Positions 9,509 to 50,190 of a DNA stretch of 64,000 nucleotides are shown in pieces. Below the pieces are notes generated by a model. It was given only the letters and a program-made list of their open reading frames with translations, did no database searches and was not told the origin of the DNA. Each line of letters begins with the position of its first letter. The stretch's first letter is position 1. Made by a program: the position numbers and the translations under genes. Source of the stretch: Paragordius varius (Eukaryota; Animalia; Nematomorpha); NCBI GenBank assembly GCA_964247055.1, contig OZ176051.1, positions 4,464,001-4,528,000 of the forward strand, read 5' to 3'.

Positions 9509-12500
9509 ATGAAAATTGCGAAAATTATGTTGAGGAGGATATCCTTACTGGTATGAATAAAGTTATTTATATCAATGTTAATTTCATCAAATATTGCGGG
9601 TAAAACTTTTGATGATAGACAAAATCTTAGCCATACCAAATTTTTTCAATTATTTAATTATTCTAAAAACGTGTACTATAACATTAAAATTATATGTTCA
9701 AAAATATAAATTATACGGACAAAGCGTAAAAAATAAAGGACAATATTTTTTTAATAGACAGCCAAATTTTTTTAAAACTGATTTAATAAACTTTTTAATA
9801 ATTATTTTTTTGGGTGTGATTAAAAAATTTAGCAATCTGCATGAAAATTTATTTTTATTTTGCATGTGTCAGATTTGTTTTGCAATATTTCTGAATAAAG
9901 CGGATCTCGGTAAATGTGAACCAGAAGAGTTGCTTGTTAATGTTGCTGCGACACCTCTCATTAATGGTAGATATACTATAATATAATATAAAAATCAATC
10001 AAAGAACATTTATTACCTTCTTTAAAATCTGGGGGGAAATTCGAAATTATACGGACAAAACCTAAAAATATAAGCATAAATTTTCTAAAAGAAACCATAC
10101 TTTTTTAAACTCCTCATTTTTAAAAGAAAACTAACTCATTGTTTTAAATTGCGAAGTATAAATTGATATGTATATTGGTTACACAATCAATTATATATTT
10201 TACAATTGTAATTATGTAATTTATATGAGAAAAATTGAGCTTTATCAAAGTATGGTTGTCTTTTTTAAAAAAACATTTGTCTATATTTTTACTTTTTGTC
10301 TGTATAATTTCAGTTTTTACTGTAATATAATATAAAAAATTTATAGAAAAAGATGAAATGTTACAGACATAACGTATTAATTAAAAACGATTTTTTCTAA
10401 AAGACAACTATTTTTATTTTTTTAAATATAACCAATCATTTTGGGTTCCATAATAGAATTGTTAATAGTTTCAATTGCATAATTTGAATTGTAATTAAAG
10501 GTTTATGTGGGAACAATCAAGGTTCCAAGTATTGTCCTTTTTTATAATTTCAATATATTTATACGTATAAATAGATATGGATGGTGATGGTATTCCCGAT
10601 AATTTTAACACTACCCGTACAGTTGTCAAGATACGAGTAAAATTTTATATTTTTTTGCATACATAAATATATTTCTTACAAAAACTATTTGCTAATCTAA
10701 TGAAACAAGTAAGTCACCGAATGTAAATATAGAAAATTTGAATTGGTACATTTCTCGTGTGTACATAGGTTAATATAAGAAATTCTTTCGCTAAAATTAC
10801 ATATATTCCGTTGGTTTATTATTAATAGTAATTATGAATATGAATTTGAAATTAACTATTAGTTTTATAGATTTTTTTCATAAATTATATAATAAAAAAT
10901 ATATTTAAAGCCTATCAAAATTAAAATCACTGATATATGATTTTAATGCCAAGTTTTTGACACACTTATATTTGATCACAATATATTTTTGTATTTATAA
11001 AACACTATATAAAACGAAGCCAAAACGGCCATTAAAACAATGAAACCGGAACCAAATTTTTGGCAAATAGTTTTATGAAATGGTGTTTAGAAACTTTTTT
11101 TAAAAAAAAACGTGAAACTAAAATGAAAAACGGTTCCAGTTTCGAACCATAATTATATTTTCTGAGAGATTAAAAGATATTTAAAAAAATGATGTGGTTA
11201 ATATTTGTGTGATGTAGGGCTACATTTTCTTAAAATATCACGAAATGTAACCGGAAATTGTAAACAATTAAACAATGAACTTGTGATTTTTTTCAAATTA
11301 TCCAATAAATTAATGAATCCGAAATATTTTGCATGCCATTTTTATTATTATTTTATATTACGTAAGCATATCTTTTCCTTTTTGGCTGGTGCTTCTTAAA
11401 AGCAATTAAACATTTTTGAATGTAACCAAATCCTAATCTCAACAATATAAGACTTCTATTTTACTGATGGTTTTTATTTCTGACACTGGTTTAGGGAAAT
11501 AAAATTTTTAAAGTTCCGCTGCTGAATATGTAAATATTGTATGTTATAAAAAACACTCACTATATTAAATATAAACCCTATCATCTCATATTTAAACTGA
11601 AAGTAAAACACGAGTTTTTTATGCATTTGGTGAAAAATAATCCTTGTTTTCTTTATGATTTAGCCGACCGATAAGATGGCCTCTCAGACAAAAATTTCTC
11701 TACAAAAATATAAAAGGCAAGCCCCAGTCGATCCCCCGTTGACCGAAGTGATCGGAGATCGTGTGTCGAAAAATGTTGCCCGTAAGATTCATAGTTTTTC
11801 AAGTGGGCTGTTTTTCCGTTTTTCATTAACCCATTACTGGCTAATAAACTTAATTCCTCCTAAATTTCAATAATAATAAAAGCTATCTTATATATAAACA
11901 TAACCATTATTAATATTTATATAATTTATGTTACTAACAACACATCTTTGCAACAACAAAAACAACGCTCTTATACAACCGTTAGTTCCACAAGCAGCGT
12001 TAAATGAAGTAAGTACCTTGATGCCAGGTCCAACAATCATTGTTAATCCACCCATGAGACGTCAAACAGTTACTAATGTGCTACCAATAACCAATCCATC
12101 CCTCGTAACAGTCGCTCCGGTTATTGCAAGCGGAGCTAGACCTGCTTTGACTGGGACAGGACCTGTTATCGCAGCAGCAGGAGGTACGCTGGGTGGAGGA
12201 ACTTTAACTAACGTAGGAGTACCCGCACAGAGCCAGATAGGTGTTGTAGCAGCTTCACCTACAACATTTATCAATCAACAAGGGCCTCCTGAGTTTGTCG
12301 TACCTGGTCAAGGAGTTCAAACCATTCAATCCAACACAATTTTGAGTGAACAGAATGATCCAAACTTAGTGGCGAATGCTGAATATCTCTCTTATAATAA
12401 TTGGGATAGATTACTTGCAAAGAACCCGAGACGAGTTCTTTTTACAAATGTGTATGGCGATATCCATCCCCGTAGTTGGGCTCCTCCAAGGCCAGTGGAA

Positions 12501-12986
12501 TCTGTTAGAGAAATATTAGGGTTGCCTCCTCCCGTATTACAACCCATAGGTATTGATCCTCGCGAACAGTTATTTACATCCAACGGTATCATCCAAAACG
12601 AAGTTGTTGGACAATCAAACATTCAACAGCCAATCGCTGGTGGAACGTTTGGTGGATTTTCTTCGGGTGGAACTTCAGCTGTCATTCAACCATCAGTTGC
12701 AGAGCCAGTCGCAAGCAATTTCGGAGGAGCCGGTGCGGTGTCCCCCAGAATAATACCTCCTTCTCAACAACGAATCGCTTCTTCTGGGATAGTAGCTGGC
12801 TCAGTCGCACCAGCAATCGGAACCGTATCTGGCGGACAAAATGCTGTTGTTTCACAAACCCAGATCCCAATTATAACGCCAGCTCCGCGACCTAGAACTA
12901 CAAGCATCATTTATAGGACGATAGCGGTCCGGGTTACTACACCAATTAGTGTAGGAGCAGTCACTGTCGCACCGGTCGTCGTTTAA
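9509..12986 (+). CDS. Secreted Pro/Val/Gly/Thr-rich protein (438 aa), probably structural or extracellular; 5 exons
   Basis: Exons 9509-9550, 9873-9966, 10575-10636, 11664-11781 and 11986-12986 join in frame with GT-AG boundaries (1317 nt). The N-terminus MKIAKIMLRRISLLICFAIFLNKADLGKC resembles a signal peptide. It is followed by DMDGDGIPD, a KYKR dibasic site and the long low-complexity ORF 11928-12986. No family recognised. Confidence 0.75.
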
Positions 12987-13235
12987 CATTCATTATCCAC
13001 TAACATGCATTAACATTCAAAATATATCACATAATTTTTATAGTTTTGAAATTTCATATAATATTAAGCACACTGATATAAATTAACCATATTGCACTGC
13101 TAATAACACAAAATTAACACACTATCCTTATTTTATTGTTATAAGCTAACTAATCTTTGTAAACCCTAACAAATTAATCATATATTTGATACTTTTATAC
13201 TACATATTATGATTATATTATTTTAGCATATATTC

Positions 13236-13241
13236 AATAAA
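13236..13241 (+). promoter_or_regulatory. Candidate polyadenylation signal for the 11986-12986 terminal exon
   Basis: AATAAA 250 nt after the TAA at 12986, followed by a T-rich tract. Weak evidence in such AT-rich DNA. Confidence 0.35.
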
Positions 13242-13385
13242 GTGAATTTGTTTTCCATTTTCTATTAAGATTTACGTGAGGAAGTTATAATAACGTTAAA
13301 AGTTGTAAAAATTTTTGGTAAAATTAGTTTTTGAACCGGTAATTATAACCTTAAGCAATTCAACTATTTTTTAAAATTATTATAG

Positions 13386-16300
13386 CTGTATTAGCCACCT
13401 CACTTGGAAAATTGGCGAATGAAACCAACATAGAAAACCCACAAATCGTATCAGCTGTTCCAGTTGCCGAATCACTTACTGCTGTATAATTAATTTTAAT
13501 ATGCCAATAAGAAAATCCAAATTAATATTCTGTTGACCACCCCAGGGCAATTTACATATATTTTACAAAAATTATACCACCTCTTTATTTCAGCTTTTGA
13601 GTTAACTCTATCTTAAAATATAATTATATAATTATCCAACTTTATATAAGTTTAAAAAGATAGATATTAAACTTTCAAGCCTATTCATAAGATTTTAAAA
13701 CATGTTTCGTATTCTACCGCTATATAACTATTTATCCAATTCGAATAGCATATTCATTAGCAATGTGGCTGCAAAATGGTTATAATAAGCCAAAACATTA
13801 TAATTGGCCTATGCGCCCAATCATGTAGTTTTAAAATTTCGACACCGGGTAAACCGTAAAGAATAGGAAAATTATTATAACAATTTGTTAGATACAAATA
13901 TATTTAATAAGCCCGAATATGTTTTTTGGATATATTAATTACGTGGTTTTTACTTAGACTATTTATGTTAGTATAATTACGTTTAAACCTAAAACATTAT
14001 TTAAGCTGGTTTAATTTTTCAAAGAAAACATTGTTATAATAAAGATTAAACTGTGGTAAACATGGAAAACTTATTAAGTGTTTTCTTCGATTTATAAACA
14101 AGATATTTAAAATGTATATTGTTAATAATATAATTTATTTAGGGAACCCATTTTCAAATTTCCGTATCTTTTCGAAATTCACCCAAGATTATTCATTTTA
14201 GCATGTTTTACATTTCATTTTAGAATAATGGAAAAACAGCCATTGAACAAAATGATCTGTAAGCAAAATGTGTAAAATATTTCAATTTTGACACTTATAT
14301 TTTAGCTTTAACAGAGCTAACAAAAAATCTTATGTAGTATTTTATCAATTTTTAAGCGATATTTTATGAAAAGCCATTTAAACCATTTCTTAGTATTTTA
14401 TATCAAAGGGTAAATTTGATTGGAACGGTAAAGCATATAATAGGCAGCCCAGCCTAAACATTTTGAAATATAATATTTTCTCTGATATACAAAAGTATTT
14501 TGCTTTAAATTTAATAAAATATGGAAACTCTATCTATCAAATTCATAAAATTTTGAAAAATTCTTTAATTTTGATATTACAAATAAAAAATTTATTCTAA
14601 TAAGGCCAAGTTAATTTTGAAAACTTGTATGTCTGTAATAGTGCCCTTTTCACTTATATTGTATGATAAAAAAATTTTAGGCTTTTTTCTCAACAATTTC
14701 TTATACCGGGTTAAACTAATGAGTATATAATATGGATTTTCAATCTAAAAGTATTTGTTAATTTAGCCAAAAAATGAAATTGTTATTGGTTCCAAACCCG
14801 CTTCATTACCAATCAGAACAGCACGCGCACCAATTAACAAGAACAAAGATATGGTTGCTAATATTCTTGATCAAGCAGGTTTTAAATTTAATTTTGGCTT
14901 TTGACGGGCCCAAACTGTCTTACTACTTATATATTGGGTTTTTAATGCTCAAGATCAGTCATTGTGTTACAACATATCGAAATAATATGATTGCTTTGTT
15001 GTTACATATGGTAAACATATGTTTAAAAAAGGTGACTAGTTATTTTATTAGCACAGTCACGGTCAAGGTGCATTCTTTACCCGTCAAGTTCATTTCTTTC
15101 AATTAAATTTGATTAATTTTTGTTTACGACCAAACCGTGCATTTGTTAATAATCTATTTACCACGTCTACTTTATGATTAAATTTTAAGAGTTAGCATTA
15201 AAAATTATACAGATGCATTCACACAATAATCAATTAATGTATCCTATCCTTTAAAGAATTAAAAATAATGTTTCAGTGCTTACGTTCTATTACGAATTTC
15301 CTATGCAATATTATGAAATAATTTCATAATCTTAAATTTTTTAGGATTAAACCAAGAACAAAAGGCATTCATTATTAGCAAAGTAAACGAAGTACAATCC
15401 AAAGGAGGAATCAAAGTTTTAACGCCTTTAGAAAAAGCAAATATAGCGCAATCTATTTTATCTAATGATAAGATAAGAGCTTTTTTGGCTGTACCAGGGA
15501 ATAAAGGTACAACAAGCTTTCATTGCTGAAACTTAGGAAAATTTTAATTACAAATACTTAAAAACACAAGACAATATTTTTTCAAAAGACAGCCATGCTT
15601 ATTTACCTTATTTTTCTTATATAAACTATTTAATTACAAGTATATAAATGTTTGTATTACAAATTTCTTTATATACTTTGGATATTACAATTGGTTATAT
15701 TATAAAATAAATTTAAATAGGTATGGCGGTCTTTGAAAAAGTATATTTGTTTTTATGTTTAACCATTTTGTCTGTGTTTACTGTAAATGTTCAAAATTAA
15801 TTAAAAAATCCCTTTAAAGCGCCAATGTAAATAACTAACATCTAACTATAAAAGATAGTATACAAAAACGTCCAAGACTTAAAAAACAATGATTATATAT
15901 GAGTTTATTATTTATCTTACAGAAAAAGTGTTAGGAGCATTACGAGCCTCTGGAATTAATATCCCAATATCCCCTCTAAGTTCCATTATAAGCGCAGCAG
16001 GAACTCCTCAAGCCGTACCAGCTGTGGCTGGACGCAAAAAACGACAAACTGCCAGAACTTTAGATCTCAAAAACACAAAAGCTAAAATGGCAAACGCAGC
16101 TGGTGGTGTCCCAGCGAGTAATTTAATTTACGTTCATATCTTTATCTATCAGCGAGCGAGCAATTTTATTGCCAATCTTTATAATTATAATGAAATAATT
16201 ACAAAATGCAACCTTTTACTTTAATATATATTTTTAAAGAGTTTAAAAGTCCATAGCACATTAACAGCCACATAATTATAAACGATAATTGTGTAATCAA

Positions 16301-19300
16301 TAATAAATGTTAACAAAAATGCAATTCTATATGGCTCCAATTTTTAGTTAATAGACCAGCAGTTTATGTAACATGCAGAAATACTTGATTATAGACCATT
16401 TCCCAGTCTAAATAAACGTTTTCCCAGTCAATCGAAACATTTTCCCAATCAATCGTTCCCAGTCAATCGAAACATTTTCCCAGTCAATAACAACATTTTC
16501 CCAGTCGATCGAAACGTTTTCCCAGTCAATAAAAACATTTTCCCAATCAATAAAAACGTTTTCCCAGTCAATAAAAACGGTTTTATTTTTAATGATTAAT
16601 ATCAAAACAAGAATATAAAAACAACTTTTAACCATTATTAGCGTAATATATGGAGATAATTTTAATTAAAAACGCAATTATTGAATGACAATTTTTCCAA
16701 GTATATTCCAGTGCACAATCTAATGACTTATTCTTTAAATGTTATAGTTTTGGAATTTGAGTTAAGATAATATTTTTTATTTTATCGATGGTTCGCATTT
16801 ATATATGCGGTTAACTGAAAAAATCTTTAGTTACGGAGGAATTAATAAAATTTATAAAAATATACCATTTTTAACACAAAGGTCATTTGACACTTTATTA
16901 TGGATCTTAAACATAAATTTTACGCTAATTTTATAATAATTAACATTTGGTTGGAGGACTAAGGCGGCCTTCCGAGTATCTTTGTGCGGGCCGCAAAAAT
17001 TTTGAAAATCTATATGCAAAAATATGCCCACAAAATCTTAGTAATATTCATACTTACGCAATTATTATGAATGAATCTATTAAATTGGTAATGAATTAAA
17101 AAAATTTGTTATATTATGTTTGTATTTTACAGTCTTATTAATCGAAAAATTATGTGAATGCCCGTATATATTTTGATTGGGGAACCGTGTGCTTTTTGAG
17201 TTAAAAATGCGGCCCGCGAAGGCATTTAGTTACACCCTTGTTTTAGTCAAATATCCTTTTTATTAAATATTTTTAAATCAAATACACTTTTATCAAAAAA
17301 TATTATCGTTTAGATATTTTTTCCGACAGTATTTTTATCGACAAACCAAGCATATTTAAAAACTATTTGAAGAGCTCCGCAAATATTAATGCGAACCATT
17401 GATAAAATAAAAAATATTATCTTATCTCAAATTCCAAAAATATAACATTTAAAGAATAAGTCATTAATGATTGTGCACTGGAATATACTTGGAAAAATTG
17501 TCATTCAATAATTGCGTTTTTAATTAAAATTATCTCCATATATTACGCTAATAATGATTAAAAGTTGTTTTTATGTTCTTGTTTTGATATTTATCATTAA
17601 AAATAAAACCGTTTTTATTGACTGGGAAAACGTTTTTATTGATTGGTAAAATGTTTTTATTGACTGGGAAAACGTTTCGATCGACTGGGAAAGCGTTTCG
17701 ATTGACTGGGAAAATGTTTCGATTGGCTGGGAAAACGTTTCGATTGACTGGGAAAGCGTTTCGATTGATTGGGAAAACGTTTCGATTGACTGGGAAAACG
17801 TTTATTTAGACTGGGAAATGGTATAGATCAGAAGTTACATTTTTGTATCAGTTATACAGAGACAAAAACCCAAAAAACACTTTTACTCAGAGTTTATTAT
17901 TTATAGGATGTTATTATCATATTAAATATCATACATTTTAATTATTTTATAAGCTTCGTTCCGTCTTTATTTTGTTTTTCATATTTCATTCATTATTATA
18001 CAGAACTGACGAAGGACGCTATACCTCATGCTGAACCCATGGGTGCAGTTCCACTTTCTGAACCAATCGCAGTATTTTATATTTCATTTGGGCAAATAAG
18101 TGACCAATTATATTTAAAAAATTTATAAAATTTATATAACATTATGCCCTGAATGGTTAATCATTTTTAACACATTCCAATCCATCTTTTTTTTCATCTT
18201 TTTAAATAATATAAAAAATATTTTAATAGTCGTCGAAAATTGGAGCCAAACCTTTAACTCGAATAGCCCGTGCTACAACGGATGCCTTGCAAAACACAGT
18301 TAATAATTATCTTTCAAAAGCAGGTGTCCTCTTTATGTTTTATCATCTTTTGTTTATTAATCATTTATTTGTATGAAAAGATGTAATGATTATCTATTTT
18401 ATAAAAGGTTTGGACCCATCACAGATATCTTTGTTTACAAGTAAAGTTCAAGAAATTCAATCTAAGGGCGGGATTAATGCCCTAACTCCTATTCAAAAAG
18501 CTGGCATTGCCCAATCCATTTTATCGAATGAGAAAATAAAAGCTTTCCTTGCAGTCCCTGGAAACAAAGGTTGCTAAATACAAAGATTAATCTTTAAAAT
18601 ATTTAATTTAAAAAGACAAAATAAAGCTCCGTTCAAGGTTTGATTATGAAACTGTTAATTATTACGACCATTAAAAATATGGATTGAGGATTCGTTCATT
18701 AATTTTTAAGCTCAATTAACTTAAATGTTTTCTACTAATAAGACAGTCATTATTATATATAATTTTACAATTTTCGGATTTAAAACATGCGCCTCTGGCT
18801 TTGGTTAAAAAAACTCAGTTTTTTGCTTGCGTTACTATCTTTAAATTTTGCTTGATAAAAATAGCTACTGTCAGTAAAATAATTATTTTGATCGTAAACG
18901 ATGAATATTTGATTTAAATTTTGACACAAATCAGCCTATTACCCCTTTATTGGGACCTGAACTGTTAAAGAAAAAAATGCCTTCTCTCAAAGTGGCAATT
19001 TTAATCAGGTTTTAAAAATTATTCATATTTTTTAATTAAGATGGACTTTTTTATGTAAACTTTTTTATACTACCACAAATATCAAATAGACACAACAACT
19101 CGCTTTTAACATGCCAACGTATTTAGTTAGCTCGATATTATATAATAATCTTTTTTTATTCACGTAGAAAAAATTATTCAGGCCCTAAGATTGATTGGAA
19201 TAAATGTGCCGACATCACCTCTCGGTGCAATTGCCGGGGCAGTAGGAGCGCCATCCTCACTCCAAGCCATTGCGGGTTTAGCGGGTCGAAGAAAAAGACA

Positions 19301-22300
19301 GACTACTCTAGCAGAACCAGTTCCTAAAGTTTTAACTGCTATAAAGAGTCCTGGAATCTCACCCGGTATTTTTTAATAAATTTTACTCATGTTTAGTCAA
19401 AAAGTGTCTTCTACAACTACAACTACAAAATTACAATTTGTAAGCATTAAATAGAGTGCGCGTTAGCATTTTATTTTTATACCTTATTTTGTTACCCAAA
19501 ACGATGAATCGTATTATTCAAATAATATATATATAGGGTTGTTTTTAAAAAAATACTCTTTTTTTCAATTTAATATATATATATATATAAATATATAATT
19601 ATAAATTTAGCATTATCGGTAGACGATATAAACAATTACCAGATATTTATCAAATCAGCCAAAGAAGAAATTATAAAAGAGCTCTCGACAGACGAAAAAG
19701 AGGCTTTAAAACTTAAAGCCAAAATTTTGAGAGAAAAATGGGAAAAAATGACACCCGAACAAAAAGCAGCTCTTAAAGCACAAGTACTAAGTGACGAGAG
19801 AGTCAAAAAATTGTTGGAAGTACCAGGAAATCAAGGTAATAACATAGATAATTATATAAAATTTTAAGTAATCATATTATTCAAATAATTTATGTATGAA
19901 ATTAGGCCACAAAATTAGCAAAGGTCATTATTGTGTTAAAATTTAATATAAAAAGATATGAAATTAGTTTTACCATAAAATATTTATTTTAAATCGTTAG
20001 AGAAAGCCAAAATGTTAATTGCCAAAATCAAGGAAATGATCGACTCTGGAACATTGTTTGGAAGCACACCTTCCGTCTCAAGAAAAAAGAGGGAAGCAGG
20101 TAGTGTTTTATCCTATTATATTTTATATATTGGATCAATTGAATTAACTGCTAAAGGAAAATTGCAAAAAATCACAACCGGCGTGTAAATTGTTTTAGTA
20201 ACCGCGATAAAATTAAAAAAGTACACCCTTTAAGTTTGAATCAAAATATTGGTTTTTTATTGATTCGTAAAATTTATTTAGCATGGTTGTTACATATAAA
20301 TTGTTAATCATTAAATAAATTGGAATAACAAAGCATAATTTTTTTTGAAAGTTTTGTATTGAATATGTTGAGTAAAAAAATGTGTGCAAATTAAATATAT
20401 TATATAATATTTATGTATTCTTGTATCTTCAGAACTCAACCAGCGAGAAAAACGACAAGCTCCAGTTCCCTCAGCGGTTAATACAGGTAAACATTTTGTC
20501 AATTGTTGCAAAAATAATATTTGTGTCATAAAGCGTTATAATTTATTTTACATAAAAACATAAAATAGCCTTATCGGTAGAAGAATTAAATAATTACCAA
20601 ATCTTCTTGAAATCTGCCAAAGAAGAAATTCAGAAGCAACTGTCGGCGGATGAAAAAGTCATTCTTAAACAGAAAGCTAAGTTATTGAAAGAAAAATGGG
20701 ACAAAATGACACCAGAGCAAAAGGCTGCGGCTAAAGCCCAAATCTTATCCAATGAGAATGTTAAAAAATTGTTGGAGGTACCTGGTAATCAAGGTAAAAA
20801 CACATTAACCATTCTTTTTTTAATATTATACATTTTATATATGTGTGAACAAACTTATATTTTTCAAAGAACAAGCAAAAATCATTCTCAAAAAAGTTCA
20901 ACAAATGATTGATTCTGGAACGTTATTTGGTTCAGCTGGTGAAGTAGCTAGAACCAAAAGAGCCGAAGGTATTTAACTTTGCTAAAAGCCTACTAAATAT
21001 TTATAATTTTGAAAAATTTATTTAAACTCTTACAATTTCTGATATGTTGAATGAACCGCAATTTCCTTTTATTGGGCTTACTAAGTTTAGGATTAACTTT
21101 GCAGTTACAAATATTTATTTATTAACACATTTATTAATGCACCATTCAAGTCCATTCATTCAAATTACCCTACGATTTTATAAAAGTTTACAAAAACATT
21201 TAGGATGCTATACTACTTTATCCTTCCCGCTTACATCCATATATCACTCCCACAGTTTATATCAGTATATATATTTTTGCTAAATAAATCAAAGGTGTCA
21301 TCGCTACCGCACCCGATTCTTTAAAGGCTCAAGCCAAAGATTTTAAAGACAACTTAGGCCAAACTTTGACTGATGAACAAAAAATGATGTTTAAAACTAA
21401 GGGAGAGGAATGGAAAGCAAAGCTGGCTGCTGGAAATTTGACTGCAGAAAATAAGGAGGCTATCAAGCAAAAAATTATTGGCAACGAAAAGGTCAAACAA
21501 TTTTTGGCCCAACCCGGAAATAAAGGTAGCTAGCTATTATATTTTATATAATATTATTGACATTATCCTTAGACAAATCCGGCCTTGTTAACATCGGGCA
21601 AAAAACATGAGATTCAATCATCATTTATTTTATATATAATTACAAAATAAATAAATATCTTGTATTGGTATTTATTTTTTACTTGCTGATGATAATTATA
21701 ATAGATTTTATAAAAACTCCCGCATAGGACAAAATGAAAAGGAGCTAAAACTTTCGAAACATAAACTAAAAAAATACTCTTGTTAAAAGTATTTTTGGTT
21801 AAATATGCTTTTGCATTAAGCATTTACAATATTATATGTATGATAATATTCATAATATATGTGATATGTTATGTATAATAGAAAAAGCTCAACAATTAGC
21901 CGCAGGTCTTAAAGCAAAGGTTGGTGGTACTATGGTGCCTCAAGGTGATATAGTGGTTCGCAAACGAAGAGATATAGAAAGTTAATGAATAATATATTTA
22001 GTATTTTTTTGTTTAGCACATTATATATTTTAAGTATCCACGTACCTAGATATCGAAATCTTTTTTTATGAAACCAAAATTAGCTTTTGTCGTTCGTTGA
22101 ATACGGTTCTTTTGGAAATTTAATAATACTATCTGTGAAATATAAAAATAGAATCAGTAATTGTTTGACAAAAAATAATAAAACCGGCGAAAAAGTTCGT
22201 TTAAGAACAATTATCATGATAATCGTTTTTACAAAAATATATGGAGCTAGAATCTAACAATTAAGACTGATAGAAACAGAATTTTAAATTTTTTCATCCT

Positions 22301-25300
22301 GAGCCGTAATAAAAATATTCAATTTTACCAAATACTTATAAATTGAAACTCATTTGGATATATTTTTATATAATGTGTAATCTTTAATCTTGATTAAAAC
22401 CAAAAAATAGGTATTAAACTTTGAATAGCTTTTTAAATAATATATTTGGTTTTTGGTGAAAATAGTAAGTGAAATTGATATTGCAAGTAATTCCCGAAAC
22501 AAACGTGCCGCAGTAGAAGGTAATTGATTATTATAGAAAAAAGTTTATCGAAGTAATTTTTGTTTTCTATATTTTATGCATTTATCAGGCGTGGGTGTTG
22601 GAGAAAATAAAGATCTGAAAGCTAAAGTCGATTCATTAAAAGTAAAATTTGGCGAAACTTTGTCGGATGAACAAAAGGCAGCATTAAAAACCAAAAGTGA
22701 CCAAATCAAAACTAAATTCTCCGAAGGTCAGCTAACCACTGAAGATAAAAATGCTATTAAAGAAAAAATTTTGGGAAATGAAAAAGTTAAAGAATTTCTA
22801 GCTCAACCAGGCAATAAGGGTATATAAATTAAATATTTTCGATAAAATATAATTCAATATAAATATAGTTTCTATGTTACTGGAATCAGAGTTATGAAAA
22901 GCATTAGGATATCATTATAAGACATCTGTTTTGATATTACTAAGGGAGCTGGCCTAATTTTTCTATATGCAATGTTCATTTATAATATAATACATTTTAT
23001 AGAAAAGGCTCAGAAATTTGCAGGAGAAGTTAAAGCCAAAATAAATGCTAAAATTCCACAAGGTGACATAATACCCGCAGTTAGTACTAGGAGGCGTAGG
23101 GAAATACCAGGTTATTATACTGATTTGATATTATCGAAATTATTCATTCATTTATTGCTAAAATTTGTATTTAGTTGAGATCCAAATAGCCGAAATTAAA
23201 GAAAAATTATAACGATATAAGAAAGTTTTTTACACTTTTGTAGTAAGTGCTCCATATCAGAGAATGGCAAAATTTGAGCATGTTTTTCGTCATAAAATTT
23301 TGCTTCATTTTAAAAAATATCACTAAAATATATTACTACCTATAAAAAGTAAAACAATATTTTTAAAATATTTTAATTTTAAGATGTGGACTCCGAAAGT
23401 CCCAAATTTTTTCGCTCTTCTAAAATGGGCCGACCAGTCATCTTAAAATAAAGAAATGCCGGGATTGCGCGATAAAATTTTATATATTCTAAGTTTTGAC
23501 ATCAAAAAGTATTTTTGAAAAAATGCATATTTTTGCAAAAATTTAATTTTAAGCAAAATTTTGTTGAACCGTATTTTATCCTTTTTTAAGCATGGTAGAA
23601 ACGGTATAAAAACGCTTTTAGATATTATAAAAGCACTTTGTCCATATAATTTGTTTATGCTAAACATTCTATCACATCATAATTTTGATTAAAATATTCG
23701 TTCGTCTTAAAAAATATTTCAAATATAATTTGTGTTTTTTTATAAAAATTCACCAAAATTCGAAATTAAAATTCTGAAGCGATAGAAATGTTCAGCATCA
23801 TTAAATTATATATTAAAAGTGTTTTTATAATATCTAAAAGCGTTTTTATACCGTTCCTTATATGCCTAAAAATAGTGTGAAAAATGCTTCAACAAATTTT
23901 TGCTAAAAATTAAATTTTTGTAGAAAAGTATACATTTTTAAAAAAATATTTTTTTGATGTCAAAATTTAACATATATTTAAAATTTTTATCGTGCATACC
24001 CGGCATTGCGTTTGTTTTAAAAGAACTAGCCCATTTTCGAAGAGCGAAAAAATTTTGGACTTTGGGCCACATCTAAAAAAATATTTTAAAAAAATTGTTT
24101 TCCTTTTTATAGGTAGTTTATAATATATATTTTAGTGATATTTTTCGAAATGAAGCATTTAGCTTTCACCAAAAAAATTTCATGACAAAAAATAAGCTCA
24201 AATTTTGCCATTTTCTGATATTGAGCACTTACCACAAAAGTGTATAACTTTCTTATATCACTCGTAAGAGCCAAAACCAAAAGCACCATGATAATCCTGA
24301 TACATTTTTCTAAAAGAATATATTTAATCATCAGGTTGTTTTTTATACCCCCCGAAAATGGACGCAGTGTAATTAATAACATAAAGATATTTATATTACA
24401 CAAACAGTTCAACTACAAATGGAGGCTATAAAAGCGCAATTTGCAAAAATGACACCTGAGGAACGGGCAAAACTTCAAGCCCAAATACAAACGATTCAAA
24501 ATCGACTTAAAACTTTCACACCAGACGAAAAAGTTCAATTGCAACAAAAATTAGCCGCTAATCCAGACTTCGTAAACCTAAAAACATGGATCTCTCAACC
24601 TGGAAACAATGGTTTTTGTTATTAAGTGACATCTTAAAAACTGACGAAATTTAAAATTAAAATTGTTTAGGTGAGATATGTGCTCAGTTTAATTTGTGTC
24701 GTCATCAAACAACAAAATTAGTTAAAAATTAAATTTTGTACAAAATTAATATATAGCAAAAGACTCAATTGTTTTGAGTAAAACAAATAGTAGTTCTGTT
24801 TTATCCTTCTGTAATAATATAATAAGTGGAAAAAGAAAATTTTACCAAATTCTAAATCCCTATTTTAACTTTTATAATTGAGATGCAATAAATTTTTTGT
24901 ATTTTTAGAAAAAATAAAAAAAATAATCGCCGACATTTCATCCAAAATCAACGCAAAAGTAGTCCAAAATGTACCAAAACCAGCCCGAAAAAGGAGAGCT
25001 ATCGATGGTAATATTCTTATGCTAAATATATATACCTTTGCCATTAGTTAAATTTATTGTAAAATAGAAATTAGGCCATAAAATGGCAAACAATAACCGG
25101 AAAAATTATTATCCTATACATATATTCAGTTCAAAATCAAATCGAGGCTATTAAAACACAATTGTCAAAAATGACACCTGACGAACAAAAGAATCTTCAA
25201 GCTCAAATTCAAGCCATATTGAATCGGTTAAAAACTATGACACCAGAGGAGAAAGCCATGCTTCAACAAAAACTTGCAACCAATCCAGAATATGCCAATC

Positions 25301-28300
25301 TCAAAACTTGGTTAATGCAACCCGGGAATAAGGGTATTAAAACTTGGATAACAGCAACGATAAATAAATTATCAATTAATATTACTACATAAAACGATTC
25401 CAATTTTACAAATTTGTATTATATCAGAAAAACTCAAAAAATTGGTCGCAGACATCGGGTCAAAAATAAAAGCTCAATCACCTGCTGGAATGTTACCTAC
25501 CCGCAAAAGAAGGGACGTTGATGGTATGAATTTTAGTTAAATTAATTCATCTGCAACGATTATTTACTCAAGGATATTAATGAATTCTAATTCCCTTTTA
25601 TTTTATATAAATATTGAATGCATCAATAAAAGACTTTATTTTAGTGCAAGCTCAACTTGAGGCCCTAAAAGTTCAATTCGCTAAAATGACTCCTGCTGAG
25701 CGGGCTAACTTACAAGCCCAAATACAAACGATCCAAAATCGACTTAAAACTTTAACGCCAGACGAAAAAGTGCAATTGCAAAAAAAATTAGCCGCTAATC
25801 CAGACTTCGTAAACCTGAAAACATGGATCTCTCAACCTGGAAACAAGGGTTTTTGTTACTAATTTACATCTTAATTAAAACTTACAAAATTTAAAATTAA
25901 AATCGTTTAGGTAAGATATGTGCTTACTTTTGTGTCGTCATTTAACCACAAAATTAGTTAAAAATTAAATTTTTGTACAAAATAAATACATAGCAAAAGA
26001 CTCAATTGTTTCGAGTAAAACAAATAGTAGTTCTGTTTTATCCATAATATAATAAGTGCAAAAAGAAAATTCCACCAAATTTAACTTATATAATTGAGAT
26101 GCAATATATAATGTGTATTTTTAGAAAAAATAAAAAAAGTAATCGCCGACATTTCATCCAAAGTCAACGCAAAAGTAGTCCAAAATGTACCAAAACCGGC
26201 CCGAAAAAGGAGAGCTATCGATGGTTAATATCCTTAAAATATATACCTTTGCTATTATTAAAATTAATTGTAAAATAGAAATTACGCCATAAAATGCCAA
26301 ATAACCGGACAAATTATTATCCTATACATATATTAAACAGTTCAAAATCAAATCGAGGCTATTAAAACACAATTGTCAAAAATGACACCCGATGAGCAAA
26401 AGAATCTTCAAGCTCAAATTCAAGCCATATTGAATCGGTTAAAAACTATGACACCAGAGGAGAAAGCCATGCTTCAACAAAAACTTGCAGCCAATCCAGA
26501 ATATGCCAACCTCAAAACTTGGTTAATGCAACCCGGGAATAAGGGTATTAAAACTTGAATAACAGCACAACAATTAATACATTAATAAATATTACTATAT
26601 AACGATTCCAGTTTTACAAATAATATTTGCTCTTGTATTATGTCAGAAAAACTAAAAAACTTGGTCGCAGACATCGGGTCGAAAATAAAAGCTCAATCAC
26701 CTGATGGAATGTTATCTACCCGCAAAAGAAGGGACGTTGATGGTATGAATTTTAGTTAAATTAATTCATCTGCAACGATACATTTACTCAAGTATACTAA
26801 TAATTTCTAATTTCCTTTTTATTTAAATATTTAATGTATTAATAAAAGACTTTATTTTAGTGCAAGCTCAACTTGAAGCGCTAAAAGTTCAATTCGCTAA
26901 AATGACTCCTGCTGAGCGGGCTAACTTACAAGCCCAAATACAAACGATTCAAAATCGACTTAAAACTTTAACGCCAGACGAAAAAGTCCAATTACAACAA
27001 AAATTAGCCGCTAATCCAGACTTCGTAAACCTAAAAACATGGATCTCTCAACCTGGAAACAAGGGTTTTTGTTACTAATTTACATCTTAATTAAAACTTA
27101 CAAAATATAAAATTAAAATCGTTTAGGTGAGATATGTGCTCAGTTTAATTTGTGTCGTCATCAAACAGCAAAATTAGTTAAAAATTAAATTTTTATAAAA
27201 AATTAATACATGGCAAAAGACTGAATTGTTTTGATTAATACAAATAGTAGTTCTGTTTTATCCATAATATAATAAGTGCAAAAAGAAAATTCCACCAAAT
27301 TTAACTTATATAATTGCGATGCAATAAATTTTTTGTATTTTTAGAAAAAATAAAAAAAGTAATCGCCGACATTTCATCCAAAGTCAACGCAAAAGTAGTC
27401 CAAAATGTACCAAAACCGGCCCGAAAAAGGAGAGCCATCGATGGTTAATAAGCTAAATATATATACCTTTGCTATTATTAAAAATTATTGAAAATAGAAA
27501 TTAGGCCATAAAATGCCAAATAATAATGGAAAAATTATTATCCTATACATATATTAAACAGTTCAAAATCAAATCGAGGCTATTAAAACACAATTGTCAA
27601 AAATGACACCTGATGAGCAAAAGAATCTCCAAGCTCAAATTCAAGCCATATTGAATCGGTTAAAAACTATGACACCAGAGGAGAAAGCCATGCTTCAACA
27701 AAAACTTGCAGCCAATCCAGAATATGCCAATCTCAAAGCTTGGTTAATGCAACCCGGCAATAAGGGTATTAAAAGTTGGATAACATCAACAATTAATAAA
27801 TTATTGGGTGGGATGATAAAAAAATTTTTTTGACTTGACTTGCAAGTTTTTAAAGTCATGGCTTGTTTTCATTTGATAAAAAATCTTAACATTACGCGAC
27901 TTAAGTCAAGCAAGAAGACTTGATTCGGAGGTGATAAATAATCATATGATCAAGTAAAACTTAAAGATTTTGCAGGTGTGGTGTAGGGCACACTTGACAG
28001 ATTTAAATGGATAAAATTATTTTGGAAACTATTTATGTAAAAATTTAGGTTTTAAATGTAATTCAGACCTTTGTTAATGCTCTAAATTGTTACTTTGATA
28101 AATTTTGGCTAATTAACCTATTCATTGGTGGATACAAAAAGGGATAAATTTATAGAAAAACTCTGCTAATATTTAAGAACATGGCATATAAAAAGATGCT
28201 AAATATATCGATTCCGTGAACGCAAAAAAATTTGATTCTCGAAAATTTCTTAAAATTAATAATTAAATATTAATCTTGTAAAATTTCAAATCTTCGTTTA

Positions 28301-30043
28301 TTAAATAAAGGTTACTTCACTATTAACTAATGTAAAGAATTTATTTCATCATAAATTTATTTTGAATGTAAGGATAGTCAATTATATAATATGTTATATT
28401 GTAATAAACATCCTCCAATAATGGACTTCAAACAAAATGAGTAGTGTGGTAAAATAATGGAAAGTGTTTTAACGGAATCTAAAAAATTTTACCAGGCTCA
28501 ATATTTAGAAACTCTATAATATTAAATAAGATACGTGCCAATAAGTTTGAAAAACTTCAATAAATGCATATTGTATTAATTGTTTATCTTTTTGTGCCTT
28601 ATTTCATAAATTTTGGCTGAAAATGATCAAAATAATTTCCGTAAAATTCGAATTGGGTGGCAAAAAAATGTTACATTCATAAGCAAAAGACTTGACTTAA
28701 GTGTTTTTTTATCACCGATCTTCAAGTGTACACTTGCTGGCTTAAGTAATGTTGCTCAACTAGCCACGCTTGGCTTACAAGTCAAGTGCGACTTTTTTAT
28801 CACCCCACCCATTAATTAATATAACTATAAAACGATTCCAATTTTACAAATAATATTAATTGCTCTTGTTTTATGTCAGAAAAACTCAAAAAATTGGTCG
28901 CAGATATCGGTTCAAAAATAAAAGCTCAATCACCTGCTGAAATGTTACCTACCCGCAAAAGAAGGGACGTTGATGGTATGAATTTTAGTTATAATTAGGT
29001 CATCTGCAACGATACATTTACTCAAATATACTAATGAATTCTAATTTCCTTTTATTTTATTTAAATATTGAATGTATCAATAAAAGACTTTATTTTAGTG
29101 CAAGCTCAACTTGAAGCCCTAAAGGTTCAATTCGCTAAAATGACTCTTGCTGAGCGGGCTAACTTACAAGCTCAAACACAAGCAATACTTGATCGATTAA
29201 AATCGATGACACCTGAACAAAAAGCCGAATTACAAAAAAAATTGATGGCATCTAACCCTGACTTTTTGAAAGCCAAAATGTTTTTGTCGAATCCCGAAAA
29301 TAAGGGTAAATATGTATAAAAATCAAATATACTTTTTCTATTGTAAAAGATCGCACAAAAATTAAAATTTATAACAAAAATATATGAATGTAAAAAAACC
29401 GTCTTATAAACTAATACACATGATATTAACAACATCTCAAGACTTTTTTAGAATTTTTTCGGGTAAAAAATATGATATTATTTTTTGATATTGCACATCA
29501 ATGGACTGCACAAAAGATCAATTTCGTTTTGTTTAAAGATGTACGAAATGGGTTAATTAGGTGTTGTTTGCACAAAAAGAGGTTAGGCTGTATAATTATT
29601 ATACAAAATTAATTAACTAAGCGAATATTTCTGTATGTTACATAGTTTATTTGTCTTATTTTCATGTTTTATAGCCAAAGTTCAAGACTTGCTTACCAAA
29701 TTAAGAAGTAGTAATCAGATCTCGCCTGTCTCAGTTAGTATTAATCCTCTAGAGGTAATTATTGTATTCTTTAAACCGTTCGTATAATATTATCCATATA
29801 TAATTACAAATATTAGTTTATTAAAAATATTTAATTTGTTAGGCAAAAGCCATACCCACAAGTTCAAGAAAACGTCGTCAAGATGTACCTAACAGCGAGT
29901 TTGTGGATAATGTTGTTAAAAAAGTTACATCCGCTGTTGCGAATCAAAAGGGTAAATAGCTTATAGGATAAATTTTTCATCTTACCCTATTATAGCTAGA
30001 AGCGACTGACACACTTACCTTAAATATATACATATTATATATG

Positions 30044-30135
<92 letters not shown>

Positions 30136-31714
30136 TCAATTAATAATACGTAGGGCAAATTTCACAAATTTGTGTTTAAACATTTTACAGTTAAATTTTT
30201 TGAAATATACACAAAATAATAATAAATTAATAGGTCCATTAACGCCCGAACAAATAGCAAGTCTTAAAGCAAAAGCGGCACCCTTTAAAACTCAATTGGC
30301 AGCTTTGACACCAGATCAAAAGGTCCAAATTAAAACACAACTCGTACAAAACCCTGATGTTAAAACATTTTTAGCAGCCCCGGAAAATAAAGGTAACAAC
30401 GTGTCTAATAAATAAATTATATTTATTTAAAATAATTTTTTAATAGCGAAGATACTATAAAATAGACATGTTTCGGAACTTAAAAGGGAATTTTGTGTCG
30501 ATAAAAAATTTCATAATATTAAATATAATATAAATAAATAAATAAATGTGCATGTCTATATTTCTTTTCTTTCAATAAATTATATAAAATAATTAATATG
30601 GCCCATTTTAATTACATCTTTACGATATTATTAGCATTGGCTCAAAAAATTCGAACGATACAACAGGGTAAAGCTGTCCCCGTGTCGTCAGGCATAAAAC
30701 CAGCTGGTGCTCCCTTCCCAGTAGTCGCAGCTACTGGTTTCATACCTTCAGGCGATGTAATCAAACCTCCTGAGCCATTCACAAGTGGGACAACACCCCC
30801 AACTCCGGCCAAAGATAAAAAAGAGGGCGAAAAGAAAGATGGCGACGACAAAAAGGAAGGCGAGAAGAAAGATGGCGGCGAAGAAAGTAAGAAGGATGGC
30901 GAGAAAAAGGAGGGCGGAGATAATAAGAAAGAAGGAGACGAAAAAAAGGAAGGCGAAAAGAAAGAGGGAGAAAAGAAGGCTGAAAAGAAAGGCAAACTCA
31001 TAGGTAATTTATTAGGCATTACATATACAATAAGTAGTGGATAGATTAAGCAAAAAAGAATAAGCCATAAAAAAATTAGTAGATTCCATGATTGATGCAA
31101 TTTTAAGTGTAACATTGACCGGCTTCACATAAACCACAGTCGACGTGTAGCTTAGAATTATTATAAATTATTATAAAACTTTTGGACAAGTATGCATGAA
31201 AAATGATAAAATAAAATTATTTTTGTATGAATTATACCTAACCAAAAAAATAAGCTTTCTAAAATTCAAGAAATAGATAGAAACCATTTTATATCTGCTA
31301 ACAAAATATATTTATATTAAAAATTAAAAGATTCCGATTGGTGTACCCTATTATCCTATATATACACTATATATTACAGGTAAGAAAATCGCAAATACCC
31401 TTAAAAATCTTGCTCTAGATGCCGTACCCCTTCCAGGAGAACTCAAGAATACCCTGAAAAAAAGTACGGATATTAAAACGAAACGATCCATAAGTGATAT
31501 ATTAAGTAGCTTGAGTGGTAAAACTACACCCAATGTATCGCCCTATGGAGGAAATACGAATTCATTTGGTTCCAATCCAAACCCACAACAAGCAGCCTTT
31601 GATTCTCAACAACAATTCGGGCAAGGTCAACAAGGACAGTTTACACCTTACCAACAACCGTTACCGGCAGAAAAGAAATCGTTATTTCAAAGAATAGGTG
31701 GTAATTTTAAATAA
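13386..31714 (+). CDS. Furin-processed repetitive polyprotein with 14 helical modules (36 exons, ~1860 codons; 1965 aa if joined to exons 9509-11781)
   Basis: In-frame GT-AG exon chain: 13386-13483, 14767-14878, 15345-15506, 15923-16117, 18004-18071, 18230-18323, 18408-18569, 19168-19365, 19611-19835, 20001-20099, 20433-20486, 20569-20793, 20870-20968, 21295-21525, 21882-21980, 22466-22519, 22589-22819, 23003-23110, 24408-24611, 24909-25007, 25130-25333, 25428-25523, 25645-25848, 26125-26223, 26341-26544, 26647-26742, 26861-27064, 27345-27443, 27562-27765, 28880-28975, 29099-29305, 29675-29754, 29843-29951, 30234-30392, 30635-31003, 31380-31714 (TAA). Every splice phase matches and there is no internal stop. 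No start codon or first exon of its own was found. Confidence 0.88.
16396..17821. mobile_element. Foldback-type non-autonomous DNA element with ~460-bp inverted arms and 22-bp subterminal tandem repeats, inside a polyprotein intron
   Basis: 16396-~16860 is the reverse complement of ~17330-17821. Termini are CCATTTCCCAG...CTGGGAAATGG, with TA on the right and GA on the left. The arms carry tandem TTTTCCCAGTCAATCGAAACG-type units. The core contains a GCGGGCCGCA/GCGGCCCGCG MITE-like piece. Confidence 0.85.
23212..24369. mobile_element. Tc1/mariner-like non-autonomous element with long TIRs (left end truncated), inside a polyprotein intron
   Basis: ~23212-23750 is the inverted repeat of ~23790-24250. 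The right end is CAGTG|TA. Same family as 52130-53266 (shared AGATGTGGACTCCGAAAGTCCC). Confidence 0.75.
24475..29172 (+). repeat. Tandem array of ~1.22-1.24 kb units (4 exons and 4 introns each), three copies, within the polyprotein gene
   Basis: Homologous exons start at 24408, 25645, 26861 and 29099; the last spacing includes a 1005-bp MITE. Introns are conserved between copies as well as exons. Confidence 0.9.
27806..28810. mobile_element. 1005-bp MITE with GGG-starting TIRs and a 3-bp ATT target-site duplication (PIF/Harbinger-like)
   Basis: Left GGGTGGGATGATAAAAAA and right TTTTTTATCACCCCACCC. ATT at 27803-27805 and 28811-28813. The paralogous introns near 25365 and 26580 lack the insert. 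Confidence 0.85.
30051..30128. repeat. (AT)39 microsatellite in a polyprotein intron
   Basis: Uninterrupted AT run read directly. Confidence 0.95.
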
Positions 31715-32221
31715 TAATAAGTTTTTAATCAAAAAACACTTTTCCATTTTGCTGTCTGTGAAATATTTTAGTTTCACTTTTTATTTATGATAAATAATAA
31801 TTTTTTTCCTAACAACAAATTGATAGTTAAAACAAACTTGGATAATAAGTAAATCGCAAGACATACAAACGTACAATTTTTGCATCATCACTCAAACTAA
31901 ACATATTAAATCGATCAATTAAACTAGATAATGCCATTGAGAAAAGACTACACGCCAATATTTGTAAATTATAGAGTTAGTGGCTTATTCCAACATAAAT
32001 CATAGCCATAAAGGCAAAATATGGATGACTTTATATCATAAGTTTAACTATTTTACCAAAAACACTTATCTTTAATTATTATACTTACGAATTTTCATTT
32101 GACCATAAACTGTATCATTATAAATTTGTATAAATGTTTATAGCACCTGCATCGATATCAGATTTTGCTGCGAAACTTAATGCCGTGATGGTATTGGCAA
32201 ATACGTTGGGATAAGGCAAAA

Positions 32222-32260
<39 letters not shown>

Positions 32261-32624
32261 TTATTTCAAATATATGTTAACCTAATTATTATATTTTACA
32301 ATATAATCAATTTTGTGTACATAGTGCTTTAAACCATCAATGTTCATTCAAATTTATATCCTATAAAGATAGTAGAATTAGTTCATTACATACTCCAAGC
32401 TTAACCACAAAAATATTTATAGCAAAACCTTTTTTTATTTAGATAAAAATAGAATAATAGATAAAAATTTTGCGTTGTTGTATATGTATCACATTTAATC
32501 ACCTTCACATAATATATATTTTATATAAATCATAACATAATTAAACATAGATATATATATATATATATATATATAATAAATGTCTCACATATGAATAAAA
32601 ATGTTTATAAAATTCATCATCCAA

Positions 32625-49530: not shown

Positions 49531-50190
49531 ATGGTTTAATATTTTATAAAATTTTAGTTGTATTCGACGCAAGCAAAAATTGTTAAACCAAATGGCGAAG
49601 AACCAGATAAATTTGAACAATCAATGTCCCAAGCATTGCTAGAATTAGAGATGAATTCGGATTTAAAGCCACAATTAAAAGATTTGTACATATGTGGAGC
49701 TAAGGTAAATTATTGTATATATTTTTAGCGATTTGAAATTGACGGAAAAAAGGTGATTGTGCTCTACATACCCGTTCCTCAACTCAAAAATTTTCAAAGA
49801 ATTCAAACCCGTTTAGTAAGAGAGTTGGAAAAAAAGTTTAGTGGAGAACCAGTGTGTTTTATTGCAAATCGAAAAATTTTACCCAAACCATCAAGAAAAT
49901 TAAGGCTCAAAGAGTTAAAACAGAAAAGGCCTAGGAACAGAACTCTTACTTCCGTCCATGATGCTTATTTAGATGATTTAGTATTTCCGGCTGAGATTGT
50001 TGGAAAACGAATACGATATAAATTAGATGGGTCAAGGCTAATTAAAGTACATTTGGACAAAAATCAAAAACCGAATCTTGAGCACAAGGTTAATTTATTA
50101 CATAATTTTTAGGTCGATGTCTTTTCAAAAGTATACAAAAGGTTAACTGGCAAGGATGTCGTCTTTGAGTTTGTGGTTCCGTTTTTTTAA
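49531..50190 (+). CDS. RPS7: 40S ribosomal protein S7 (eS7), 195 aa, 4 exons separated by three 24-nt introns
   Basis: Exons 49531-49533 (ATG), 49558-49704, 49729-50088 and 50113-50190. Translation: [38 protein letters not shown]...[25 protein letters not shown]...[30 protein letters not shown]...[29 protein letters not shown] follows the stop. Confidence 0.97.

Follow-up and report, generated by a model that had tools for sequence, protein, structure and literature searches.

A probable lineage-restricted tandem-repeat polyprotein gene with regularly spaced convertase-type sites in the horsehair worm Paragordius varius

The window analysed here is a stretch of 64,000 nucleotides (nt) from the genome of the horsehair worm Paragordius varius (Nematomorpha), corresponding to positions 4,464,001 to 4,528,000 of the forward strand of contig OZ176051.1 in NCBI GenBank assembly GCA_964247055.1; all positions below are those of the window. 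Its G+C content is ~28 % throughout, and it carries intron-rich animal genes. The subject of this analysis is a chain of exons on the + strand, at 13386–31714. Its product represents a sequence family that is new, but its kind, the tandem-repeat polyprotein, is already known. The chain was rebuilt by script as 35 exons, every one with AG and GT flanks, separated by 34 introns. It comprises 1834 codons, and its only stop is the terminal one at 31712–31714. Twenty-nine of the 35 exons are symmetric, in phase 1-1.

Exon boundaries were set by script with a check of the flanking dinucleotides, using the open stretches of the + strand within 13000–32300. A splice-site matrix trained on the chain's own exons recovered a mini-exon at 20433–20486, and a second mini-exon at 22466–22519 was found by reading the intervening sequence; a laxer scan returned no further mini-exons. 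Among the splice sites, confidence is lowest for the donor at 16107. A candidate extra exon at 13892–13945 was judged spurious. A first-pass annotation of the locus had described 36 exons and ~1860 codons: its in-frame splicing and both of its end points are retained in the rebuilt model, its exon and codon counts are not, and the 36th exon was not found in the chain.

The coding status of the chain was assessed from its paralogous exons. Differences among the paralogous helical exons are mostly synonymous, with a ratio of non-synonymous to synonymous substitution rates (dN/dS) of ~0.04–0.19 in young copies, and for older pairs dS is saturated and dN is 0.17–0.36. Within the youngest duplicated unit, identity is 97 % in exons versus 91 % in introns, and the gap columns are nearly all intronic. 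The presence of 35 open, phase-compatible exons, together with the low dN/dS and the higher identity of exons than introns, therefore indicates a real coding sequence under purifying selection. Another sample with the same species label, and a second species label, shared 24–28 % of the 31-mers of a region in which exons make up 38 %. The gene and its polyprotein architecture are real, selected and lineage-restricted. The array has grown as symmetric exons of phase 1-1, a class typical of shuffled extracellular modules, were duplicated, and the gene is a clean example of growth by this route.

The repeat unit of the array is built on a helical exon, of which there are 14, ranging from 159 to 231 nt. 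Each carries two helix starts of the form (L/M/F)(T/S)xx(E/Q)(K/R), ~22–25 residues apart, and a conserved end, N..K..(F/L)L..PGNK, with the terminal variants PGNK, PGNQ, PGNN and PENK in the alignment of all 14 exons. A linker exon with a convertase-type site comes after the helical exon (Table 1). The 14 modules, paired helix starts and module ends described in the first-pass annotation are all recovered, the E-K that it placed after these ends opening the next exon in 11 of the 14 cases, and its example unit of 100 amino acids (aa) is matched exactly by residues 875–974. Modules 7–12 are the youngest part of the array. Of the two tail exons, that at 30635–31003 encodes a Pro-rich stretch followed by K/E/G-rich repeats of 11–13 aa, and that at 31380–31714 encodes KTKR and a Q/N/G-rich end.

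Table 1. Exons and modules of the polyprotein locus, with the two candidate upstream exons
Feature	Positions	Strand	Details
Candidate shared 5' coding exon	11676–11783	+	ATG start; phase-1 donor C|gtaaga at end
Large P/G/V/A-rich exon	11986–12986	+	Stop at end; internal phase-1 donors, e.g. after 12585
First recognisable polyprotein exon	13386–13483	+	Strong acceptor, phase 1
Module 1 pre-exon	14767–14878	+	RTAR
Module 1	15345–16107	+	Helical exon 15345–15506; linker exon 15923–16107 (RKKR)
Module 2	18230–19365	+	Pre-exon 18230–18323 (RIAR); helical exon 18408–18569; linker exon 19168–19365 (RRKR)
Module 3	19611–20486	+	Helical exon 19611–19835; linker exon 20001–20099 (RKKR); 54-nt spacer exon 20433–20486 (REKR)
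Module 4	20569–20968	+	Helical exon 20569–20793; linker exon 20870–20968 (RTKR)
Module 5	21295–22519	+	Helical exon 21295–21525; linker exon 21882–21980 (RKRR); 54-nt spacer exon 22466–22519 (RNKR)
Module 6	22589–23110	+	Helical exon 22589–22819; linker exon 23003–23110 (RRRR)
Modules 7–12	24408–28975	+	Three copies of an a/b two-module unit; helical exons 204 nt, linker exons 96–99 nt, RKRR each
Module 13	29099–29951	+	Helical exon 29099–29305; linker exons 29675–29754 and 29843–29951 (RKRR)
Module 14	30234–30392	+	Last helical exon, PENK end; no convertase site after
C-terminal tail	30635–31714	+	Exons 30635–31003 and 31380–31714

The chain contains 15 R-x-K/R-R sites against 0.42 expected from its composition, one per linker exon and at the same place in each. 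All 15 occur in the order given by the first-pass annotation, and the RTAR, RIAR and KTKR motifs that it listed are also present. Arg occupies both P1 and P4 in 15 of 15 sites, and only Q, E, A or D occurs at P1'. Lys totals 256 in the chain and Arg only 66, 41 of which lie inside the R-x-K/R-R sites; the use of Arg at P1 and P4 of every site despite this excess of Lys argues for protease recognition and against a general basic patch. In two pairs, RKKR...REKR and RKRR...RNKR, the sites are separated by 10–17 residues and the latter site is on a 54-nt mini-exon; these pairs look like an arrangement for spacer excision. Convertase processing of the polyprotein is strongly suggested by the way in which Arg is used. 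Full cutting and trimming of the basic tails is predicted to give units of 96–160 aa with an isoelectric point (pI) of 9.0–10.4 and a net charge of +3 to +11, a typical unit having 96–109 aa and a mass of 10.7–11.9 kDa.

Cys is absent from the chain, as had been reported, and so is His; Lys makes up ~14 % of residues, and Tyr and Trp each about 0.5 %. In effect, Arg is set aside almost entirely for the putative protease sites, and neither Cys nor His is used at all. The basic motifs could also be read as nuclear localisation signals (NLSs), the classical monopartite consensus for which is K-K/R-x-K/R. The RKRR-type motifs would then belong to an uncleaved intracellular protein, probably nuclear or nucleolar, consisting of Lys-rich helical repeats. 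A basic, Cys-free chain with 14 % Lys and a K/E-rich low-complexity tail, for which a signal peptide was not found, is consistent with such a protein. An NLS tolerates Lys, yet every one of the 15 sites has Arg at P1 and P4 although Lys is four times as frequent as Arg in the chain, and outside the sites there is comparatively little Arg. Nor is there an obvious nuclear rationale for 15 evenly spaced sites, each in a linker and followed by Q, E, A or D, or for paired sites on either side of spacers of 10–17 residues. A nuclear protein is thus considered quite unlikely.

The structure of the modules was predicted with AlphaFold2 for two single helical exons, using their paralogues as the alignment. 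Each model contained 4–5 helices according to DSSP, broken at the T-P motifs. A Foldseek search of the PDB with these single-exon models gave 0 matches, and the best Z in VIA-align was 3.9. The commonest Pro-to-Pro gap in the chain is 22 residues. Alternation of hydrophobic and polar residues at i/i+2 (160–170 degrees) was enriched, with z ~4–5 on the Eisenberg scale. This alternation would suit a precursor of structural or surface material, such as cuticle, egg-string, larval-cyst matrix or an interfacial film, in which the units assemble and cleavage is partial or serves assembly. The low-complexity tail, with its Pro-rich, K/E/G-repeat and Q/N/G-rich parts, and the structural appearance of the adjoining and possibly joined P/G/V-rich exon point the same way. 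Both AlphaFold2 models, however, give helices rather than strands, the residues expected for cross-linking are absent (no Cys, 0.4 % Tyr), and no link to a tissue is available. We therefore regard a structural material as fairly unlikely.

To place the modules among known proteins, we built a profile from the 14 helical exons and ran it with hmmsearch on 1.84 billion representative proteins. At E≤0.001 there were 213 matches, none of them below 1e-30, indicating that no protein in this library has several such modules. The best matches read or scanned, which reach E values as low as 1e-16, are bacterial; they are small proteins that have a signal peptide and TPEEK repeats. Ten of these were scanned, most of which pass Pfam DUF3106 (hmmsearch E 1e-16 to 1e-9) and some DUF1104 or LTXXQ. 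The profile match depends on residue order, real sequences scoring 54–77 bits versus ≤6 bits for shuffled or reversed ones. An hhalign comparison of the modules with a bacterial set gave 97.8 % over 47 columns, a value that is inflated because the set was picked from the matches to the module profile. A comparable array of convertase sites was found in none of the 150 best profile matches.

Searches of the family and structure databases gave a similar picture. All 14 modules score below the Pfam thresholds, the best being DUF3106 at 18.2 bits against a cut-off of 24.3; sub-threshold matches occur in 7 of the 14, and the tail and linkers are without any Pfam match above cut-off. A word-indexed homologue search with a helical exon gave no candidates, and the best score in a search of the ESM Atlas was 0.69. 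When the profile was compared with all PDB sequences, the top match was 9zem, a de novo designed helical repeat, which shows the ease with which a helix-cap motif arises; Spy and CpxP appeared at E ~0.1. The first-pass view that the module belongs to no named family therefore agrees with the Pfam, PDB, ESM Atlas and word-indexed searches, all of which ended without a family assignment.

The bacterial DUF3106, DUF1104 and LTXXQ families, the last including Spy and CpxP, share with the modules a two-helix core with (M/L)(T/S)PE(Q/E)(K/R) starts ~23–25 residues apart, a likeness at motif level that is statistically significant. The periplasmic bacterial proteins with TPEQK repeats are small and single and have their own signal peptide but no convertase sites, whereas the modules fall below every Pfam gathering score for these families and have in addition the conserved N..K..L..PGNK end. 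One explanation of the likeness is that the TPEQK core was acquired from bacteria, from a protein of the DUF3106/LTXXQ type, and then amplified, in which case the units would be ATP-independent extracellular chaperones like Spy and CpxP. The order-dependent match to secreted bacterial TPEEK-repeat proteins, the hhalign value and the weak appearance of Spy and CpxP in the PDB search are in keeping with this origin. Against it, the scores add up over the copies of a brief helix-cap motif, and circularity affects the hhalign value; the gene is host-like in composition and has 34 spliceosomal introns, and a designed repeat heads the PDB matches. A bacterial origin thus appears highly improbable. 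The resemblance is better described as a likeness of the helix-capping repeat than as family membership, and on the sequences compared it may be convergence.

The 5' end is the weak part of the model. Exon 13386–13483 opens at a phase-1 acceptor, and an upstream exon is therefore needed. No ATG with a usable donor was found between 12987 and 13386, where the ATGs present run into stops. The hydrophobic peptide IQLFFKIIIAVLATSLG, encoded in the DNA before 13386, was considered as a signal peptide and rejected: it needs a weak acceptor at 13356 (score 2.3 versus 8.5 at 13386), and it is probably intronic since it lies mostly within the T-rich tract ahead of the strong 13386 acceptor. The ATG exon at 11676–11783 encodes K-Y-K-R followed by QAPV, echoing the REKR followed by QAPV of the spacer exon at 20433–20486. 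The phase-1 donor after 11783 is compatible with the acceptors at 11986 and 13386, to which it is putatively joined, and several phase-1 donors within exon 11986–12986 could also feed 13386. The sequence thus makes it plausible that the polyprotein takes over a first exon from further upstream.

Exon 11986–12986 could belong to a separate neighbouring gene or encode the N-terminal portion of the polyprotein. It lies in an upstream open stretch on the same strand, at 11925–12986, of ~350 codons, rich in P/G/V/A/T/S and with a local G+C content of 36 %. It belongs to no Pfam family, and a word-indexed homologue search with it gave nothing at E≤0.001. Two further exons were considered as the 5' end. 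One of them, a short 'MKN' exon at 11123, was discarded, since a contig of another sample skips the segment that contains it. This segment, 11009–11451 (443 nt), is replaced by 27 other letters in one contig of that second sample, which has the same species label, and represents an insertion/deletion polymorphism that may be due to a mobile element in the reference. A 'MCQICFAIFL...' exon at 9864–9966 is possible but unsupported as a signal-bearing 5' exon.

The explanation that we consider reasonably probable is a lineage-restricted tandem-repeat polyprotein that is cut after R-x-K/R-R by a furin/kexin-type enzyme in the secretory pathway. We infer that the chain is transcribed as one mRNA, secreted and cleaved, and the same holds for any function assigned to it. 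The precursor would enter the secretory pathway and be cut after each R-x-K/R-R by a proprotein convertase of the furin/kexin type, with subsequent removal of the basic tails by a carboxypeptidase. The predicted products are ~13–14 related but non-identical helical proteins of ~96–160 aa, basic (pI 9–10.4) and without Cys or His, together with two short spacer peptides and a low-complexity C-terminal piece of ~310 aa. Gln would be at four of the new N-termini, where pyroglutamate could form. Each unit would consist of Pro-punctuated helices starting with T/S-P-E-E/Q-K capping boxes. By analogy with the polyprotein allergens of roundworms, our best guess is that the units are abundant outside cells and serve as carriers or as a coating in the body fluid or at the surface; lipid binding by the units is pure analogy.

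Several results weigh against processing in the secretory pathway or against the helical units that it would release. A start codon and signal peptide for the chain were not found in the upstream DNA examined, and the only phase-compatible upstream ATG exon (11676–11783) is hydrophilic and without signal-peptide character; the label 'secreted' in the first-pass annotation is thus treated as putative. Neither the profile nor the word-indexed search found a homologue from which function could be transferred. AlphaFold2 confidence was low for both models, with a predicted local distance difference test (pLDDT) of 68 and 66 and a predicted template modelling score (pTM) of 0.36 and 0.27, and there was no tertiary fold match. 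The mean hydrophobic moment at 100 degrees was not above that of shuffled sequence (z −2 to +2 depending on the scale). Of the amphipathic helical modules proposed at first pass, the helices are therefore retained as low-confidence predictions and the amphipathic character is not. Finally, the sampled words were absent from the small RNA runs of the species, which are tiny. Four other runs, aligned to 10500–16360, covered introns at an even depth and showed no splice joints, which identifies them as genomic DNA.

Other features of the locus were recorded in its introns and elsewhere in the window. The 2.1-kb intron after the module 1 linker exon contains a large inverted repeat with arms at 16391–16810 and 17377–17829. 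The arms are ~420–450 nt long, 94–96 % complementary and ~570 nt apart, each holds a 21-bp minisatellite of 9–10 copies, and the whole looks like a foldback element or one of the miniature inverted-repeat transposable element (MITE) type. In the young part of the array, the introns at 27766–28879 and 23111–24407 are ~1.1–1.3 kb long versus ~100 nt for the equivalent introns in sister copies, which suggests insertions after duplication. The intron preceding the last helical exon contains an (AT)n microsatellite of ~53 copies at 30024–30129. Outside the chain, an exon of ribosomal protein S7e at 49753–50109 (Pfam E 3e-49) provides a useful taxonomic marker for the genome, and an Rfam scan of the window gave no match.

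Among known systems, the exchangeable apolipoproteins (ApoA1, ApoA4 and ApoE) have the 22-residue Pro spacing in common with the chain, but the helical hydrophobic periodicity of these proteins was not found in it, and the modules score ~14 bits against the Pfam Apolipoprotein cut-off of 90. The products of Drosophila Baramicin are short peptides, not helical proteins of ~100 aa, and we know of no sequence relation to the chain, although no direct comparison was made. What Baramicin and other genes for multi-product immune polypeptides have in common with the chain is a set of tandem related peptides freed, or in the chain predicted to be freed, from one precursor at furin sites (PMC8423362). 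The fungal Kex2-processed repeat proteins (KEPs) resemble the chain as repeat precursors; they are secreted, and a kexin-type convertase cuts them into many near-identical products (PMC6339444, PMC7329392). They differ in their dibasic KR sites, short peptides and kingdom, and are unrelated.

The closest parallel in architecture is the nematode polyprotein allergen (NPA), represented by ABA-1 of Ascaris and gp15/400 of filariae. In both the NPAs and the chain, one precursor holds a tandem series of helix-rich units, each internally repeated twofold, the sites are of the K/R-x-K/R-R type and regularly spaced, and the units of a single array are divergent in sequence. The NPAs are reported from nematodes only, with units of ~15 kDa and ~133 aa that form a seven-helix double bundle with an internal duplication and an absolutely conserved Trp; they mature by cutting at K/R-x-K/R-R, and their repeat region has few or no introns (PMC3079579). 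The units of the chain, in contrast, are ~100 aa and Cys-free, and Trp is absent from 5 of the 14 modules and at three different positions in the other nine. Each module is split by introns into 2–3 exons, giving at least two introns per unit. ABA-1 was not among the PDB matches of the module profile at E≤10, and no NPA family appeared at E≤10 in Pfam, which presumably holds an NPA model. The likeness to these allergens proposed at first pass thus extends to architecture, site type and internal duplication, and not to sequence, Trp, unit size or introns.

Since Nematomorpha is the sister phylum of Nematoda, and the plan of helical tandem units with an internal repeat and K/R-x-K/R-R cutting is the same, the chain could in principle be an ABA-1-type homologue that goes back to the common ancestor of the two phyla, has diverged deeply and binds fatty acids or retinol. 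Given the missing sequence matches, the inconstant Trp, the shorter units and the introns that split every module, such homology is very unlikely. A broader proposal, which we also place on the unlikely side, is that the chain is the horsehair worm's own polyprotein of small helical carriers, being either an NPA counterpart diverged beyond recognition or an independent invention in the sister phylum. If this were true, one transcript would supply many variant binders of hydrophobic ligands for the body fluid or surface of the parasite.

Tandem-repeat polyproteins rarely release folded proteins in place of short peptides, and the textbook case, the NPAs, has been described from nematodes only. 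With a polyprotein of different structure in Nematomorpha, it would become testable whether this production of small helical proteins in bulk predates the nematodes or arose on two occasions. Such a polyprotein would likewise raise the testable question of what role such proteins play in a parasite that absorbs nutrients through its body wall.

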